Shown here: one piece after another, positions 17,447-30,721 of the stretch
How positions within the stretch are numbered: position 1 is the first letter of the stretch
Layout: each line of letters starts with the position of its first letter
NCBI GenBank assembly: GCA_964252035.1
Contig: OZ176203.1
DNA: 64,000 nucleotides
Direction: 5' to 3' (one strand)
Source: Podarcis erhardii
Taxonomy: Eukaryota
The notes under the pieces: model-generated
Seen by the model: only the letters and a program-made list of their open reading frames with translations
Told to the model about the DNA's origin: nothing
Database searches by the model: none
Translations under genes and position numbers: made by a program

Positions 17447-20400
17447 CTACGAAAGAAAAGAGAATCATTAAAAACAAAAACCATGAGGCATTAGTTTGAC
17501 CCTCAAATATGCTCCAATAAGTTCAATTTTTAAATTTACTAGAAAGCATATCACAGAAGCACCTATGTTGAGATTAACTTTCAATTTGAATAAGTTTGAT
17601 CCACCAGCCCTATTGAACAAAGGTATAATTCTAAACAAAAACCTTGAAAATTAACTTTATCATTTCCTTTAGAAAGTAAGACTAACATATCTATCAACAT
17701 CTCTAAAGAGATTAGTGCTTGCTGTGTTCTTAACTCTGTTCTGCCAAATAGCGCTAGTTACTTTAGCCTATGAAGTACTGCTTATTATTCTATCTAGCTC
17801 TTTACTTTGATTTGCCCTGTGAGACAGTCAGCGCTTTCCGTTTTTAACATTAGAATGACTGAGAAATAGGATTTTGTGGAATTGGCTGGAATGAACAATT
17901 CCCAATATTCTTTGCTTCAGGTATTTAAGTATACAGTTGACTTGCAATTTGCATTATTGCAGTTTTACAAACTTGATGGCAGGTCAACAGACATAGCATT
18001 AATTAAATGCACACAAAGTGGAAAGCTTAAGTTCTTTTGCTGTGGAAAGAGCTTTTAAGCTCTCAGGCTTGTTTACCGGCCTCAGGGAAGGTCTCAGATG
18101 GGCTCTGGATCTCGCTGGAACTTCCCAGAGCCCATGCAAGACCCTCCCAGAGCCAAGTAAGGAAAGCGGACAAAGCCCACTTCTCACACTGGCTTAAAAA
18201 AAAAAAAGGTAGCCATGGTCATGCAGGGGTGGTTCCAGGGCTGTTCTGACTATGCATGGTTTCAACTTTAGGCACAACCCACCGTGCCCCCTCCCCCCAG
18301 CGCGACTGCTACACAGGTTGTGTGTATTTACACTGCATATTTAAAATGCAAAGAGCTTCAAGTTGACAAACATCCCTCTTGCATAGATTCCAGAAAACAA
18401 ACACAAAAAAGGTTCAATGTAGCATTGTGGACATTTTCAAAGAAAAATGGAACTCTTCAGCCTAGATCCTGCTAACTCTCCAAAGTAAGCACAGTGGAGA
18501 AGTAAAAGAAATCAAGACTAAGGACTGCCTATTTCCGTATGCAAACCTACTCCAAGAACTAGTGATCTCAATCCTCTCTTCTAATTTGGTGACATCATTC
18601 TCATTCATACTCAGCAGTGGCTGGTGAGGTGAGGTGACTCGCCGTGAAAAACTGCCATTGCACTCTGACAGAGGGCTGAGAGTGATTTCCTTTCCTTACA
18701 CTTTTTGTGCTGGTAGACAGTGACACATCCTTCAATATGCAAATACCTGGTGATGAATGTGGCACCCTACTCCCATCTCCCAGTGCCAAGAAGAGCAGGA
18801 GTTCCCTTTTCTGCTCCCATACACTGTCTACCAGCAGCTTCACCTACCTGACACACTGGCTGTTGCTATTCAGACTACTTTCAGAACCCTAACCCATGTG
18901 GACTTCCACTTAAAGAGCTCTCTGCAACTGGTTGGCTTTCCAGCAGGGGTTGGGTTAACTTTTTTCAGCATTTCATCCTGGGTAACTTTTTTCAGCATTT
19001 CATTCCAGGGACCACACACCACCACTGTCTATGTCCAGAGGCAAAAGGCTTTCCTCTCACATGGTCCTTACAACCTGGTCACATTATGAGCAGCACAAGA
19101 GAATTTATTTTTGCTCAAATGCACCATTTGCCTCTTCTTTCATCTATGTTTCAGAAAACATACATGTATGCCAAGCGGCTTCACAATATTTAAATTGCTT
19201 GTGTTGGTATGTACAATGTTGAAAAATAATGTCTGATCTGTTTTACATTAGGGTACTAAGAACAGATTTTTTTACCCTATTGTTCCCAATGAAAGAATGT
19301 GCTGAACTCTACTGACCGCTCCAGTGATGTAAATGATAAAAGCCCCAGCACAGCCATCCAATGAGAAAATGCTAAGCCAGACGCCGGTATTATTTCAATG
19401 GAACAGAGATTCCCCACTAGGCTTTACAATAAAGGATGTAAAGCACTCCTGTGGGTGGAAATAAAGCACTATCCTGATTTACTAATTACAGAGAAATCCT
19501 GTAGTTCAGAGTTTTCTCTAATAATAAGACACATACAACAGAAAAGGGGGAAAGCTTCATTCAGTACCCTATTGAACACTGAAGCCACTTCACAGATTAG
19601 AAAACACAAAGCTTAAGAGACAGGTTCATTATCTCACGGTTCACGCAACAAGCTCTGCTAAGTTTTCAAGAGATCTACATCCCTCCGGCCACAGTAATTT
19701 GGGGGAAGGGAAAGCACGCATGACACTTATTTTAAGAATCCCTCCTTGATTACCACACAGCAAATTAGCTAACTGTGGACATAAGACTCATTCTTCTTCA
19801 AGGGGGTCCCATCCCTGCCCAGTGTCTTGGAAAGAGATGGCAATCAGAACAGACCCATCTCCCCCAGGTGCTCCAGCCCAGCCCAGAATGGCGCATGCCT
19901 ATGTAAACAAAGAATGACAAAACTTAGAACAACACAGGAACATTGCAGCTGAGGTCATTTTTGTTGCCAACATAAGCAGTATTTAGAGCTACTGTATCTA
20001 CCGATTAGTTTGCTATATAATGTTGCCCAACTTACCACAAACTACTGTACTCAGGTACAGCCAACTACAGTACCCCTCATCTGACCCTCCCCTGTAAATC
20101 TAATGGGAGGGTTGCACCTCCTGAGCCCGTCCCTATAGAAAAGGGAACTGCGACCCCCCAAACCCTTTCCACCCAGGGACGACTGTGGGCAGGATTCATG
20201 CACTGCAGGGGGTGGAACTAGATGGCCCTTGGGAATTCCTTTCCAACCCTACAATGCTACGGCTCTATTCCATTCTACATTTGTCCCAAGGGGTAGTTCA
20301 GCCAGGAAAGCATGAGATTCTTCATCTCAGGGTTGTGGGTTCGAATCCTCCCCCCCCCAAGGTGGGTGAAAAGACTCCTGCATTGCAGGGGGTCGGAATG

Positions 20401-20908
20401 GATGATCCTCGTGGTCCTTTTCCAACAGTTCCATCCTATTAATCTAAGGGCTTGGTCGAGGAGGCCATGGTGGCTCCAGCCTGGGGCGCTTATCTCCACG
20501 ACCAGGGTCAGGTTTGAGGTGGAGAACGAGGAAAAGGAAATAGAAAAGAGAGGGGGGGCAAAGGAGAATAGTGAGAAATCGTGACCAGCACTAGAAATGT
20601 GGGATCGCGCATTAAAAAAATAAAATAAAAATCAGGGGACGTGGAAGGGGAAAAGGTCAGGGTGGATGGGATGGGGAGGCCCATGTTTAGAGAGAGGGAA
20701 CACGGGGGCCGGATTTCCCAAGCTGAAAGAGGAGAAAAGAGGTAAGAGCCGGTGCGAGGCGGAGGTGCCGCCCGGGGGGGGGGAGGGCGGTTGGTGGCCG
20801 AAACGCCCCCCAGCCAACGGCTTTAACGGCCGCCGGCGCCGTCTGTGGAGATTCCGGCCGGAGCACGTGGGCCCCGCCAGGGCCGCCCCGCCCGCGCGCG
20901 CACGCCGA

Positions 20909-20940
<32 letters not shown>
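20909..20940. repeat. (AC)n microsatellite in IPO5 intron 1
   Basis: Direct inspection. Confidence 0.95.
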
Positions 20941-20943
<3 letters not shown>

Positions 20944-21067
20944 CGCTGGGAGGCTGACAGGGCAAGGCCGGGTCCGGAGAGCGCGGTCGGGCGAGGCTGG
21001 AGCCGGCGGGAAAGGGAGAGCGGGGAACCGGGGGGGGGGTACGAAACAACGCGAAGCCGCCAGTCAC

Positions 21068-21169
21068 CTCGGCCTGTTTCCGGACGACATTGTCCGGGCT
21101 GAGCAGGTTGCCTAGGAGAAGATAGAACTGCTGCTGCTCCTGCTCCGCCGCCGCCGCCGCCGCCGCCAT
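21068..21169 (-). CDS. IPO5: Importin-5 coding exon 1 ([34 protein letters not shown])
   Basis: ATG at 21169 in a GCC-rich Kozak context; matches the known IPO5 N-terminus; donor GAG|gtgact; 102 nt. Confidence 0.97.
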
Positions 21170-22004
21170 GGCTGCCTGAGAGAGAGAGAGAGGCCAGCCG
21201 GGCAGGGAGGAGGGAGGAGGGAGGCAGGAGGCGGGGTCTCCAGGCCGCGCACCGACCACAGGGAGGCGGAGCCGCCGCCGCCGCCGCGCTTCTGATGAAC
21301 TTCTCCCCGCCCCTGCCGGCAACACAGACGCCCCCTCCCTACCGCCCGCCTCCTGCCGACGCCGGGCTGCTGCTGCGGCGCTCCCATTGGGTGCAGGGCG
21401 AAAGGCGGCCTTGCTCCCATTGGGCCGCGGCCCAGCCGCCTTTGTGATTGGGCGGGAAAGCGCCATTGTGAAGTCACTTCCCTCTCGCCTCCCTTAGTCC
21501 GTCTCCCCCTCCCTTGCGGGAGGGGCGGGAGGAGGGAAGCGGTTTGCTTCATCGAGCTGGGCGCCCATTGGCGGGAGGCCCTGGCAGAGGTTCTCTGACT
21601 GGGCGGGAAAACAGTCGGGCGGCCAATAAGGAGGGAGTGGGGGGCGGGGGAGAGAGTAGGAAAAAGGCGGGAGAGTGTGAGGGGACTTGGCCGGCGGGAA
21701 AAGGCCGGCGCGTTGCTCCTGATCTTCGTTGTGCGAAGCGAGCGCGTCGGCTTTGTGTTGTGACCTTACCGCCCCGAGTAGGAAATACTGTGTCCTATAA
21801 GCACAGACCCTCCAAGTGCCCCTATTTTTCCAGAAACCGTTGCGGTTTCTGATCTGCCCCGCTTTTCCTTAGGACGTCCCAGTTTTCATCCGAGAGATGC
21901 TGGAGGTTATGGTAGGACGTCCCTATTTTCCATATTTTCATCGGAGAAATGTATACGAGTTATGCGACCTCCCCTAGCCAAGGAGACGAGTAACTATACA
22001 GCCT

Positions 22005-27451: not shown

Positions 27452-27642
27452 CTAGTCTTCTGGGAAATCAAGTTTTCTTTTAATTCCTGAGACCGCTTCT
27501 CTTGTTCCAGGAGAATGGTTCAATTTCTGAGGAGTCTCTGGTTCTGATAGCTGATTTCTTTTCATTGCTGGTGATTGACAGTGACCATCCAAAGGAAGAT
27601 CTGGTTTGGAATTTTCTTGGGCACCAAGTTGTATTGTACGAG
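27452..27642 (-). CDS. APOBEC-like gene, terminal coding exon (ARTIQLGAQENSKPDLPLDGHCQSPAMKRNQLSEPETPQKLNHSPGTREAVSGIKRKLDFPED*)
   Basis: aattttag|CT, phase compatible with the upstream phase-1 donors; 62 sense codons then TAG at 27454-27452; absent from the ORF track in this frame. Confidence 0.7.
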
Positions 27643-27787
27643 CTAAAATTATTTTTAAAACAACATGTTACAATCACATTTTGAACTTTGGGAAATATAA
27701 TGTTCTGTAGGCTTGCTTCTTTAAGTTTCATCAGACCCCAGTATCCAGTGGTGTCCTCCATACCAACAGCTCTTTGATCTAGTAGAG

Positions 27788-27923
27788 CAGGCATGGCCAA
27801 ACTTGGCCCTCCAGATGTTTTGGGACTACAATTCCCATCATCCCTGACCATTGGTCCTGTGAGCTAGGAATGATGGGAGTTGTAGTCCCAAAACAACTGG
27901 AGGGCCAAGTTTGGCCATGCCTG
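27788..27923. mobile_element. 136-bp hAT MITE with 8-bp TSD in an APOBEC-like gene intron
   Basis: caggcatggccaaac TIRs; TSD tagtagag. Confidence 0.9.
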
Positions 27924-28039
27924 TAGTAGAGTGTTCTCTCAGTGTAACTCCCTGCAACACCCAATGTTCCCCTAACATGAGCTCAAGAGGGTCAGGGGGA
28001 GCTGTCTGGGAGAGAGGGGAAACTGGTAAAAATTCTCAC

Positions 28040-28096
28040 CGTCCCCATTGTTCTGAGGAAAGCCATCACTGGGTCTAAGAACTGTTGTCGACTCCA
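28040..28096 (-). CDS. APOBEC-like gene, possible optional 57-nt phase 1-1 exon (VESTTVLRPSDGFPQNNGD)
   Basis: ccag|TG...G|gtgaga; frame-preserving; but the preceding intron would be only 62 nt. Confidence 0.4.
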
Positions 28097-28158
28097 CTGG
28101 ACACCACTGGATACAGCACACAGAGTTTCTATTAAATTTAATATACTGTTGACATTAC

Positions 28159-28201
28159 CTGAAATGCTGTCTGAATCAATCATTTTGTCATTTTCTTCCT
28201 C
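28159..28201 (-). CDS. APOBEC-like gene, 43-nt exon (EEENDKMIDSDSIS)
   Basis: Acceptor ttttttaccccag|GAG in phase 0 matches the main-exon donor; donor TCAG|gtaatg in phase 1 matches the terminal exon. Confidence 0.72.
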
Positions 28202-29576
28202 CTGGGGTAAAAAAACAATAACACAAGTTGGGGAAGAGGACTATAAAGAGACCACTGGTTAAGTTGAAGCATTCGTGAAGATATATGGCTAGCATAGGCT
28301 AGATCTACACAGCTATTAAAAAACACTATTTACATGCTCTGCAAAAAAACCATTGTAAAGCTCACAATTCAAAATATCATTGAGTTGCAATTTCATCTGG
28401 TGTCACTGTGTTATAACACATTTATAATGCTGTATTTTGAGTCCATAATCTCCTCTGTATGTTACCATACAACTGAATTTTACAGTATAAAATTGACTTG
28501 TTGCTGAACATTAAACAGAGTGATATAGTACACACATAAAAGCATAAATAAGCCAAGACTGTAGCACAGGGCTAGCTGACGTGAAACCCTCCAGATGTTT
28601 TGAACTACAAATCCCATCATCCTTGACTAGGGATGGGAGAGAAATTCTATTCAGTTTGCATTTAAAGGCCAATCTATCAAATTCTCACTTCGTGAAACGT
28701 AATATTACTGTAATTGTGGTAGCTCTTTTTCCAGCTGTCATTAAATTTGCTGTGGCAAAATCCATGTTGTAGGACCTGGTTCATATTAACATTTGTCCAT
28801 GCAATTCTGAACATGCATGCAGTTTAGGGTTGGCCGGTTTTGTTCATGCATAAGAAAAACAGATTGTGGGGGAGAAATTAATCTGGTTCACTTTGCTCAT
28901 CCCAAACTGATACACAAACCTAAATGTAGATTTCCTTCAACATTCCCACATATTGAAATCTGCAGTGCAATTCTCCAACAAAAAATGCATACATGGGGTG
29001 GGGGGGAATACACACAAATGAGTATATTAGTAGAAATAAAGTACAAAAATGCATTATATTAGGGGAAATGGCTTGCAAAAATGCTTATATTAGGCAAAAT
29101 AGAACAAACGCACATGGAAATGTATGGATATTGTGTGGACTTTAATTCTTTAAAAGCAAGCTGATGCACATATGGGGTGAACTGAGATAAGATTTAGAAA
29201 AATGAGAAAGTAAAACTAGCAGATTTGAACTCTCCCGTTCCAGCTCTAATCCCAGGAACCTTATTCGGCATCATTTTAGCAACACTGTATACAAGGAAAC
29301 GTGCCACTCTCAAAATGTTTCCTGTACTTTATATGAACTGCTTGCATTTAATTTATAAATAGATGCCACTCTCCAGTTCTTAGAAAACTTTAGGTACTTT
29401 ATCAGTGTTTAACACTGATAACATAATAATTTACATTCAAAGTGAAATAGATTTTCTGTTTGTGTGTGTTTCATATAAACCTGGTTGAAATTTAAGGCAA
29501 ACTAATAATAAATTTAGCAAGCTTCCAATTGTGTTGCAAAGCAAATGATAGATCTGCACCTACAGGAAATATTGTA

Positions 29577-29826
29577 CAGTCATACCTTGGAAGTCGAACA
29601 GAATCTGTTCCGGAAGTCTGTTTGACTTCCAGAATGTTTGGAAACCAAAGCGCTGCTTCTGATTGGCTGCAGGAAGCTCCTGCAGCCAATCAGAAGCCGC
29701 GGAAGCCCTGTCGGACGTTCGGCTTCCAAAAATAGTTGGCAAACTAGAACAGTCACTTCCAGGTTTGTGGCATTTGGGAGCCAAAATGTTCAAGAATTAA
29801 GCTGTTCGAAAACCAAGGTACGACTG
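29577..29826. mobile_element. Tigger-like MITE in an APOBEC-like gene intron; same family at 58316-58557; related elements at 54492-54665 and 57138-57315
   Basis: cagtcrtaccttgg TIRs; TA TSD. Confidence 0.85.
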
Positions 29827-30029
29827 TACTGTATCGGGGACAATGCAGAACCAAAAGGTTGAGAAGGGTTTTTAATCATTCTTAGAACTGAGTGGAAGTC
29901 CACTTGGTGGATTTCCCTTAGAACAAGCATTTGGAAGGCCCCCTGTCCTACAACCCAACAAAATTTGTGTATCATTTTATCATTTATGATCTGGGTCAAA
30001 GTTTTGCAATGCCTCCACCTCCCTTTTAC

Positions 30030-30609
30030 CTGTTTCAAAAGTGTGTCCAGATCATCTGCATTCTCCTTGCTTTCTTCATCCAGATTTGACCATGGCGTAA
30101 AGTTTTCTGATGGGTCTACAAATAGAGCAAAGCATTCTTCATAATCAGATTTGTTCATCATTTTAATCGAAACCCCAGAGCTCTTCAGAAGGTGTAGACC
30201 TTTTTGTTCTCCTTCTCTGTTAAAATAATATGGCCTCGAAGCTTTTATTTCCATGCATATTCCACTGTTTTTTTCCATAAAAGACTTTATCCTGACACTG
30301 CATTCATGGCAAGGGGTGTATGACACAAAAAGGTTCAGTTCATAATTTTCTTTGGTGATGTTTTCTGCGATTTGGTCTTCAATATAATCTAAAACTAAAA
30401 CTTCAGCATGCTTGCCACCAGGATCATTGTACACATAGCCCCAACTTTCCCAAATCAGGTTTTCTTCCTTTTTGAAACTAAACAATAGTAATGTTGTTTT
30501 GCGTATTTTTGTGTTGTCAAAATCTTCTTGGAAGTCTTCTTTCGGACATAGTTTTTTGAGGAAGACTGGCATTTCCTCTGACACTTCTAAACCAGAAACT
30601 TTCAAAAGG
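30030..30609 (-). CDS. AID/APOBEC-family zinc-dependent cytidine deaminase, main exon carrying the whole catalytic domain
   Basis: HAE at 30410-30402, x29 spacer, SYTPCHEC (P at 30314); downstream family-type motifs SRPYY, GLHLLKSSGVSIKMM, DYEECF, FTPW; strong acceptor tttatctttacag|C and donor CAG|gtaaaa; no stops; first in-exon ATG at 30572. Confidence 0.93.
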
Positions 30610-30721
30610 CTGTAAAGATAAAAGGGCATTTAAAGTAGAAATAGAAAAATGCTTTTGTCCATCAGAACTACAAGCACCACCCTCAACACATGGCTGGGTA
30701 GGGGGGGATTAGTTCTTCATT

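Follow-up and report, generated by a model that had tools for sequence, protein, structure and literature searches.

The window, by which we mean the whole stretch of 64,000 nucleotides that was analysed, carries on its minus strand a deaminase gene with three coding pieces: a long exon with the catalytic domain, a microexon, and a terminal exon that ends in a cluster of short candidate motifs. The following features were assigned.

30030..30609, minus strand: deaminase exon, containing the whole deaminase domain; 181 codons
28159..28201, minus strand: microexon of 43 nt, encoding EEENDKMIDSDSIS and the first base of Ala196
27452..27642, minus strand: terminal coding exon, encoding residues 196-258 and the stop codon; end of the predicted disordered C-terminal tail
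27577-27560, minus strand: QSPAMK, with S219-P220, the lacertid version of a conserved upstream S/T-P
27538-27524, minus strand: ETPQK, with T232-P-Q-K235, a match to the full CDK consensus [ST]Px[KR]
27517-27506, minus strand: HSPG, a minimal S-P, lacertid-only and outside the conserved module
27484-27455, minus strand: IKRKLDFPED, candidate RxL (Cy) motif of type RxLxF; a strict-regex match
27454-27452, minus strand: stop codon
27300..27451, minus strand: 3' untranslated region, crossed by transcript contigs that extend about 110-120 nt past 27300

The deaminase exon follows an acceptor AG that ends at 30610, has its start codon (MPVFLKK) at 30572, and closes with a phase 0 donor, CAG/gt, after 30030; HAE lies at residues 55-57 and PCHEC at residues 87-91. 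The tail exon starts at 27642, after an AG acceptor (27643-27644) that overlaps an in-frame stop, and is in phase 1, so that one base is required from the exon upstream. Because phases 0 and 1 are incompatible, the deaminase and tail exons cannot be spliced directly, and it is the 43-nt microexon (ccccag/GAGGAA and TTCAG/gtaatg; phase 0 in, phase 1 out) that bridges the two. The microexon peptide EEENDKMIDSDSIS is also found in annotated Podarcis and Zootoca models, and the same exon chain recurs in annotated models of many species. The three coding pieces sum to 777 nt, or 258 codons plus the stop codon, and specify a protein of 258 aa. The minus-strand reading of 27640-27452 is RTIQLGAQENSKPDLPLDGHCQSPAMKRNQLSEPETPQKLNHSPGTREAVSGIKRKLDFPED, followed by the stop. 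An earlier, sequence-only reading of this DNA had reported that the terminal exon encodes QSPAMK, ETPQK and HSPG and ends in GIKRKLDFPED, and translation confirms each of these; the tail frame that it gave also holds, and is set through the microexon, which it had not mentioned.

A second form of the tail can be read at the same locus. Read-through of the microexon donor (28158) gives, at 27992-28183 of the window on the minus strand, an alternative tail …SISGNVNSILNLIETLCAVSS… that is without the TPxK and RxL motifs; this is the form taken by the Lacerta agilis model P0003. Sarcophilus, Erpetoichthys and Ranitomeya also have models without a TPxK/KRKL end; such tails could reflect either regulated alternative splicing or annotation noise.

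Sequence matches identify the gene as a lacertid lizard's APOBEC5 (A5). Pfam searches with the deaminase exon returned APOBEC2 (3e-43) and NAD1 (2e-39), and PDB relatives of the deaminase domain include APOBEC3G and AID. The domain is modelled by AF2 with pLDDT values of 76-96 and an APOBEC-like order of strands and helices, and the HAE...PCxxC zinc-deaminase signature is present. The closest protein is a Podarcis muralis model of 258 aa, with 91% identity over the domain; other near matches are from Zootoca vivipara, Anolis, Sceloporus, Pogona, Phrynocephalus and the marsupial Monodelphis domestica. Full-length matches that bear the tail are lacertid, iguanian, marsupial, amphibian and fish A5 models, down to shark, and the nearest relatives among the sequence matches are A5 orthologues, not AID, A1, A2, A3 or A4. 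To find more A5 species, 1.84 billion cluster representatives were searched with a profile, and a word search and look-ups of clusters were run as well; together these added nine further marsupials, two species of Xenopus, Phyllobates, Ranitomeya and Ambystoma, together with the fishes Polypterus, Erpetoichthys, Lepisosteus, Polyodon, Huso, Arapaima and Scleropages and the shark Heptranchias. The Latimeria A5 model (P0012, 344 aa) lacks a tail and contains two A5-type deaminase domains in tandem, which may reflect either a tandem duplication or an annotation that joined two genes.

Other features of the locus were noted in passing. The interval 20001-22000 is a GC-rich island (GC 0.61) with an open reading frame at 20687-21466 on the minus strand that contains a (CA)n run. 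We take this frame to encode the N-terminus of importin-5 (IPO5), which would place APOBEC5 just upstream of IPO5 on the same strand. The intron stretches 27756-27983, 28554-28667 and 29580-29921 have summed contig depths of hundreds to well over 100,000-fold in the transcriptome runs, with many loose ends; they are SINE-like interspersed repeats of high copy number. The 279-aa 'ORF' at 29790-30629 enters one such repeat, since the intron happens to stay open.

A5, also called 'UA2', has been characterised in marsupials in a 2025 bioRxiv preprint, which gives its range as jawed fishes, amphibians, reptiles and marsupials (10.1101/2025.05.21.655229). The NAD1 clade has been described from ray-finned fishes, coelacanth, amphibians, lizards and marsupials (PMC5889660; Krishnan et al. 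2018), and because the two reported ranges match closely, A5 is probably NAD1. The preprint reports that marsupial A5 is a DNA mutator, that it restricts HIV-1 modestly and that it co-sediments with virions (10.1101/2025.05.21.655229). When carrying a C-terminal HA tag it is nuclear and cytoplasmic, without a reported cell-cycle analysis; the balance of the two varied between cells, and the authors suggest that cell-cycle phase might explain this (10.1101/2025.05.21.655229). They describe the A5 C-tail as disordered, with '239PxK' and '256KRKL' as its only conserved elements and no function assigned to them, and call the conserved tail 'crucial, yet uncharacterized'; the text of the preprint, the only study of the protein, makes no mention of cyclin, NLS or phosphorylation (10.1101/2025.05.21.655229). 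The lizard protein shares with marsupial A5 the one-exon deaminase domain, the HAE...PCxxC signature and the disordered C-tail, and the two marsupial elements correspond to P233-Q-K235 and K250-R-K-L253 here. Since the preprint already reports this tail with its PxK and KRKL, marsupial mammals included, the architecture is not new, and the statement in the earlier reading that no such architecture was known went too far (10.1101/2025.05.21.655229). Beyond the preprint, the present analysis adds that conservation extends to the Thr that precedes PxK, the Phe that follows KRKL, a hydrophobic P-4 residue, the fixed spacing, and the upstream S/T-P.

Splicing between the deaminase and tail exons is supported by sequencing contigs of a close relative. 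The junctions 30029/28200 and 28159/27642 (GT..AG, minus strand) are each crossed by one contig in each of X1, X3 and X4, three small runs from two studies of an organism about 95-96% identical to the window. These runs are presumed, as a guess, to be RNA, and their intron-less contigs match the expectation for mRNA; the spliced contigs also reach the 3' UTR and an upstream 5' exon. Run X2, from a different organism, has unspliced contigs across the tail acceptor, which could be DNA or a retained intron. Compared with the window, the relative's transcripts carry H238R and E244K, both matching Podarcis muralis, and one of its runs additionally shows D254E and V246I; residues 238, 244, 246 and 254 thus differ, and the core and key positions of the motifs are unchanged.

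The same contigs of X1, X3 and X4 differ from the window in the deaminase exon (30030-30572) by many non-synonymous and few synonymous changes, among which are I23R, R24L, T26K, S43R/I, V47A/M, E70K, D153H and E170K. This pattern suggests that the catalytic domain is evolving fast, possibly under positive selection, in contrast to the frozen motifs of the tail.

The tail as a whole is predicted to be disordered. An AF2 run on a 26-sequence alignment gave residues 192-258 of the Podarcis orthologue pLDDT values of 37-61 and no secondary structure. A Pfam search with the tail returned only Mif2_N at E = 0.008, below its cut-off and taken as noise, and a sequence search of the PDB gave no match at E <= 10. 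Conservation was assessed in a set of 32 A5 tails from shark, bichirs, gar, sturgeons, osteoglossid teleosts, frogs, salamander, lizards and 10 marsupials. The mean frequency of the most common residue, taken over 14 clade representatives, is 0.92 in the eight motif columns, 0.29 in the remaining tail and 0.57 in the deaminase domain, and the motif mean was not reached by any of 100000 random draws of eight tail columns; TPxK and KRKL(x)F are therefore conserved well above the linker that surrounds them. This bears out the sequence-only reading for these two motifs and not for HSPG, which it had listed beside them. When the 77-aa tail is shuffled, a full CDK site arises in 12% of cases, a strict RxL match in 10%, and both together in 1.4%; as the joint occurrence in a single sequence is only mildly unlikely, the weight of the argument rests on conservation. 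A terminal R-x-L-(x)-F combined with TPxK is confined to A5 proteins within the 150 best AID/APOBEC-like cluster representatives.

The proximal candidate CDK site has the form TPx[KR], always with Thr, and is located 17-19 residues before the RxL Arg in 28 of the 32 tails; the T-to-R distance, scored in 29, is 19 residues in 23 tails, 18 in two and 17 in one. No residue other than Lys occurs at +3 (K235) in either the set of 14 clade representatives or the 26-sequence alignment, and this points to CDK and not to another proline-directed kinase. The exceptions to this arrangement are Monodelphis, with APQK, Xenopus tropicalis, with TVEK, and two bichirs, in which TPSK lies 18 residues before an internal KKRKLNY. 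Monodelphis and Xenopus tropicalis are without a proximal phospho-acceptor yet keep RxL(x)F, so the CDK site is not indispensable. An upstream [ST]P precedes the proximal site by 12-17 residues in 25 of 27 tails, and its aligned Pro column is 71% conserved among the 14 clade representatives. QSPAMK is the lacertid form of this site, with S219-P220 13 residues before T232; lacertids and agamids have Ser as the acceptor here, and only phospho-Thr is recognised by Cks proteins. The 12-17 residue spacing overlaps the Cks priming window of 12-16 residues (PMC9385143). For the distance from docking motif to phosphorylation site the published optimum is 20-40 residues (PMC6620034); S219, 32 residues from R251, falls inside this range, and T232, 19 residues from R251 and 21 from L253, is at its lower edge. 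The P-x-T-P context of the proximal site is confined to squamates. HSPG is absent from Anolis, agamids, marsupials, amphibians and fishes, and as a lacertid-only feature is ruled out as part of the module.

At the end of the tail, R-x-L-(0-1 residue)-F is present in all 32 A5 sequences. Sixteen of the 29 tails scored by position read RxLF and 13 read RxLxF, and a difference of 0 or 1 residue between L and F is what separates type 1 from type 2 RxL motifs. In these 29 tails P-4 is V (23), I (3), A (2) or F (1), P-3 is K (28) or R (1), and P-1 is K (26), R (2) or T (1), with R at P-2 and the Phe in all 29; residues after the Phe, where present, are mostly acidic. The lizard motif has I249 at P-4, K250 at P-3, R251 at P-2, K252 at P-1, L253 at P0 and F255 at PhiC, followed by an acidic end, and IKRKLDFPED fits the strict consensus [^EDWNSG][^D][RK][^D]L.{0,1}[FL].{0,3}[EDST] (ELM DOC_CYCLIN_RxL_1; regex as quoted in PMC12356897). 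Fewer than 15% of peptides that match the strict RxL regex bound cyclins in a large screen (PMC12356897). Binding was favoured by A/V/I/C at P-4, K/R/V/C at P-3 and R/K/Q at P-1, by Arg over Lys at P-2, by Leu at P0, and by Phe at +1 or +2, with Phe much better than Leu at PhiC and a mild preference for an acidic C-flank (PMC12356897). The A5 tails have a preferred residue at every one of these determinant positions, which strengthens the proposal in the earlier reading that KRKLDF is a candidate cyclin-docking motif of RxL type. The string 'KRKL' is absent from the main text of that study (PMC12356897).

Two other readings of the C-terminal residues do not fit the alignment. A D-box (RxxL) is ruled out, as it requires Arg three residues before the Leu, where Lys is present in 28 of 29 tails, and a C-terminal KxKxx retrieval signal would suit the KRKLF end of marsupials and not those tails that extend past the Phe, such as the lacertid one. 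Two RxL-like elements are present in the A5 proteins of bichirs (P0018 and P0163; Polypterus and Erpetoichthys): the internal KKRKLNY, whose distance from TPSK is the canonical one, and VKRRLFF[ED]D at the terminus. The candidate docking motif looks duplicated in these fishes.

Conserved basic residues invite the explanation that the tail is a nuclear import signal and nothing else. Importin-alpha would then bind KRK, perhaps extended by the Lys of PxK into a long bipartite signal, the TP would be a generic phospho-switch at most, and no cyclin would take part. We consider this unlikely. Classical signals are either monopartite, K-[KR]-x-[KR], or bipartite, KR-x(10-12)-basic cluster. The tail has no match to K-[KR]-x-[KR] and thus no classical monopartite core; as a bipartite signal its upstream cluster is a single Lys, its 14-residue linker is longer than the classical 10-12, and just three basic residues are conserved. 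K-R-K is nearly invariant, and the fixed spacing of PxK and KRKL could mirror the two importin-alpha pockets, but an NLS requires neither the Leu and Phe, invariant in 32 of 32 tails, nor the hydrophobic P-4, found in 29 of 29 (V, I or A in 28). The shark sequence, VRRTLFK, keeps R-x-L-F with the basic cluster thinned to two basic residues, which argues against a pure NLS. RXL and NLS elements, both being basic, are known to overlap (PMC7518283), and A5 is partly nuclear, but the HA-tagged protein, which in the published constructs has its tag placed right on the motif, is not concentrated in the nucleus (10.1101/2025.05.21.655229). The motif might instead be a degron read by cyclin F, an SCF receptor, and set the turnover of A5 in S/G2, with CDK phosphorylation beside the point. 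Cyclin F recognises RxL and favours Arg at P-2 particularly strongly (PMC12356897), a residue that is invariant in A5, and two lineages retain the docking motif after loss of the TP site; such a degron leaves unexplained the co-conserved TPxK with its CDK-type +3 Lys and fixed spacing, and we regard it as improbable.

Some other partner altogether—a PP1-type RVxF ligand, a MAPK dock with a proline-directed site, a basic patch for nucleic acid or virion packaging, or a further ligand—has in our view a small chance of being correct. KLDF fits the broad RVxF pattern, the squamate P-x-T-P is an ERK-like context, and A5 co-sediments with virions in the preprint that leaves the function of the tail open (10.1101/2025.05.21.655229). 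However, the PP1 pattern ([RK]-x(0,1)-[VIL]-{P}-[FW]), which fits RKLDF here, fails in the 16 of 29 tails that read KRKLF, and a MAPK D-motif, with its Phi-x-Phi, is ruled out by the same RKLF species; P-x-T-P is restricted to squamates, the invariant +3 Lys favours CDK over MAPK, and a plain basic patch needs no invariant Leu and Phe. That the motifs are chance patterns in a low-complexity tail, or that the exon lies outside the deaminase mRNA, is extremely improbable. Both motifs do appear in 1.4% of shuffles, most regex matches are non-binders (PMC12356897), and unspliced X2 contigs cross the tail acceptor; against this stand the spliced contigs of three runs from two studies, the recurrence of the exon chain in many species, and the conservation of the motifs from cartilaginous fish to mammals while the remaining tail is unconserved.

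We return to cyclin docking, and propose that the A5 tail is a CDK-substrate and cyclin-docking module that possibly doubles as an NLS and is akin to the tail of SAMHD1, a reading to which, from the conservation and spacing of its motifs, we give somewhat better than an even chance. The module would have three linear parts: an S/T-P, a T-P-x-K/R 12-17 residues further on, and, after another 17-19 residues, [V/I/A]-K-R-K-L-(x)-F near or at the C-terminus. The V/I-K-R-K-L-(x)-F element would act as an RxL (Cy) motif and bind the hydrophobic patch of a cell-cycle cyclin of A, E or B type, and docking would bring T232, and possibly S219 as well, to the active site of the CDK. The KRK cluster, which overlaps this element, may in addition serve as a weak NLS; nuclear access would then be switched by phosphorylation or by the binding of a cyclin, with the outcome that the localisation, activity or stability of a DNA mutator is gated by the cell cycle. 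Across the 29 tails K-R-K is more invariant than cyclin docking alone needs, which suggests that something further constrains it, for instance the binding of importin or of nucleic acid, or a composite NLS-RXL element. Cyclin binding, CDK phosphorylation and a physiological effect are what we infer from these sequences.

The closest functional parallel of the A5 tail is, by analogy, SAMHD1. Each is an antiviral enzyme whose tail has T-P-Q-K and then a Leu-Phe docking element near the C-terminus, and the spacing of TPQK to dock is longer in human SAMHD1 than in A5, about 28 residues. The SAMHD1 tail combines a CDK site, 592-TPQK-595, with a C-terminal LF dock for cyclin A2, and phosphorylation by cyclin A2-CDK1/2 in cycling cells turns its restriction off (PMC8618861; PMC12356897). 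The catalytic domain of SAMHD1, a dNTPase, is unrelated, and the resemblance is one of convergence and not of homology; its docking motif is also atypical, with Val at P-2 and specificity for cyclin A2, where A5 has the canonical Arg. Within the AID/APOBEC family, AID has a C-terminal nuclear export signal and some A3 proteins show cell-cycle-dependent localisation. Short terminal signals control the access of these mutators to nuclear DNA, as is proposed for A5, but no non-A5 member among the 150 best AID/APOBEC-like cluster representatives has the R-x-L-(x)-F and TPxK module.

The docking element itself is most readily compared with that of E2F1-3, which have in common with A5 the string V-K-R-[RK]-L-x-hydrophobic and basic residues that overlap a possible NLS; VKRRLDL is the cyclin A-binding motif of E2F1 that has been crystallised (PMC12356897). 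E2F1 differs in having Leu where A5 has the stronger Phe, in the N-terminal rather than C-terminal position of the motif, and in being a cell-cycle regulator and not a deaminase, and both the NLS and the cyclin binding of A5 are putative. Composite NLS-RXL modules have been described in E2F1, p21, RB1, CDT1 and the beta-herpesvirus kinases M97 and U69, and in M97 the binding of cyclin A hides the NLS and relocates the protein (PMC7518283).

The mechanistic idea of the earlier reading, a disordered tail that may couple a mutagenic deaminase to the cell cycle, is partly supported: it has come through every sequence-level test and has been sharpened by them. That A5 has had, since the origin of jawed vertebrates, a hard-wired cyclin-CDK input, made up of the RxL(x)F dock, the TPxK acceptor and the priming-type S/T-P upstream, that gates its nuclear access, activity or stability by cell-cycle phase seems to us possible, at a little less than an even chance. 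Should the proposal be wrong, the invariant R-x-L-(x)-F and T-P-x-K would still be the first residues to mutate. If it is true, A5 would be the first AID/APOBEC enzyme found to be docked directly to the cell-cycle engine, a convergent counterpart of SAMHD1 regulation, and the conserved tail of an ancient DNA-mutating deaminase would have a concrete mechanism that can be tested by mutation. Such a mechanism could explain how a mutator is kept off replicating DNA, or could provide a switch between cycling and resting cells as in SAMHD1, and it would bring a new class of proteins into the repertoire of RxL substrates.
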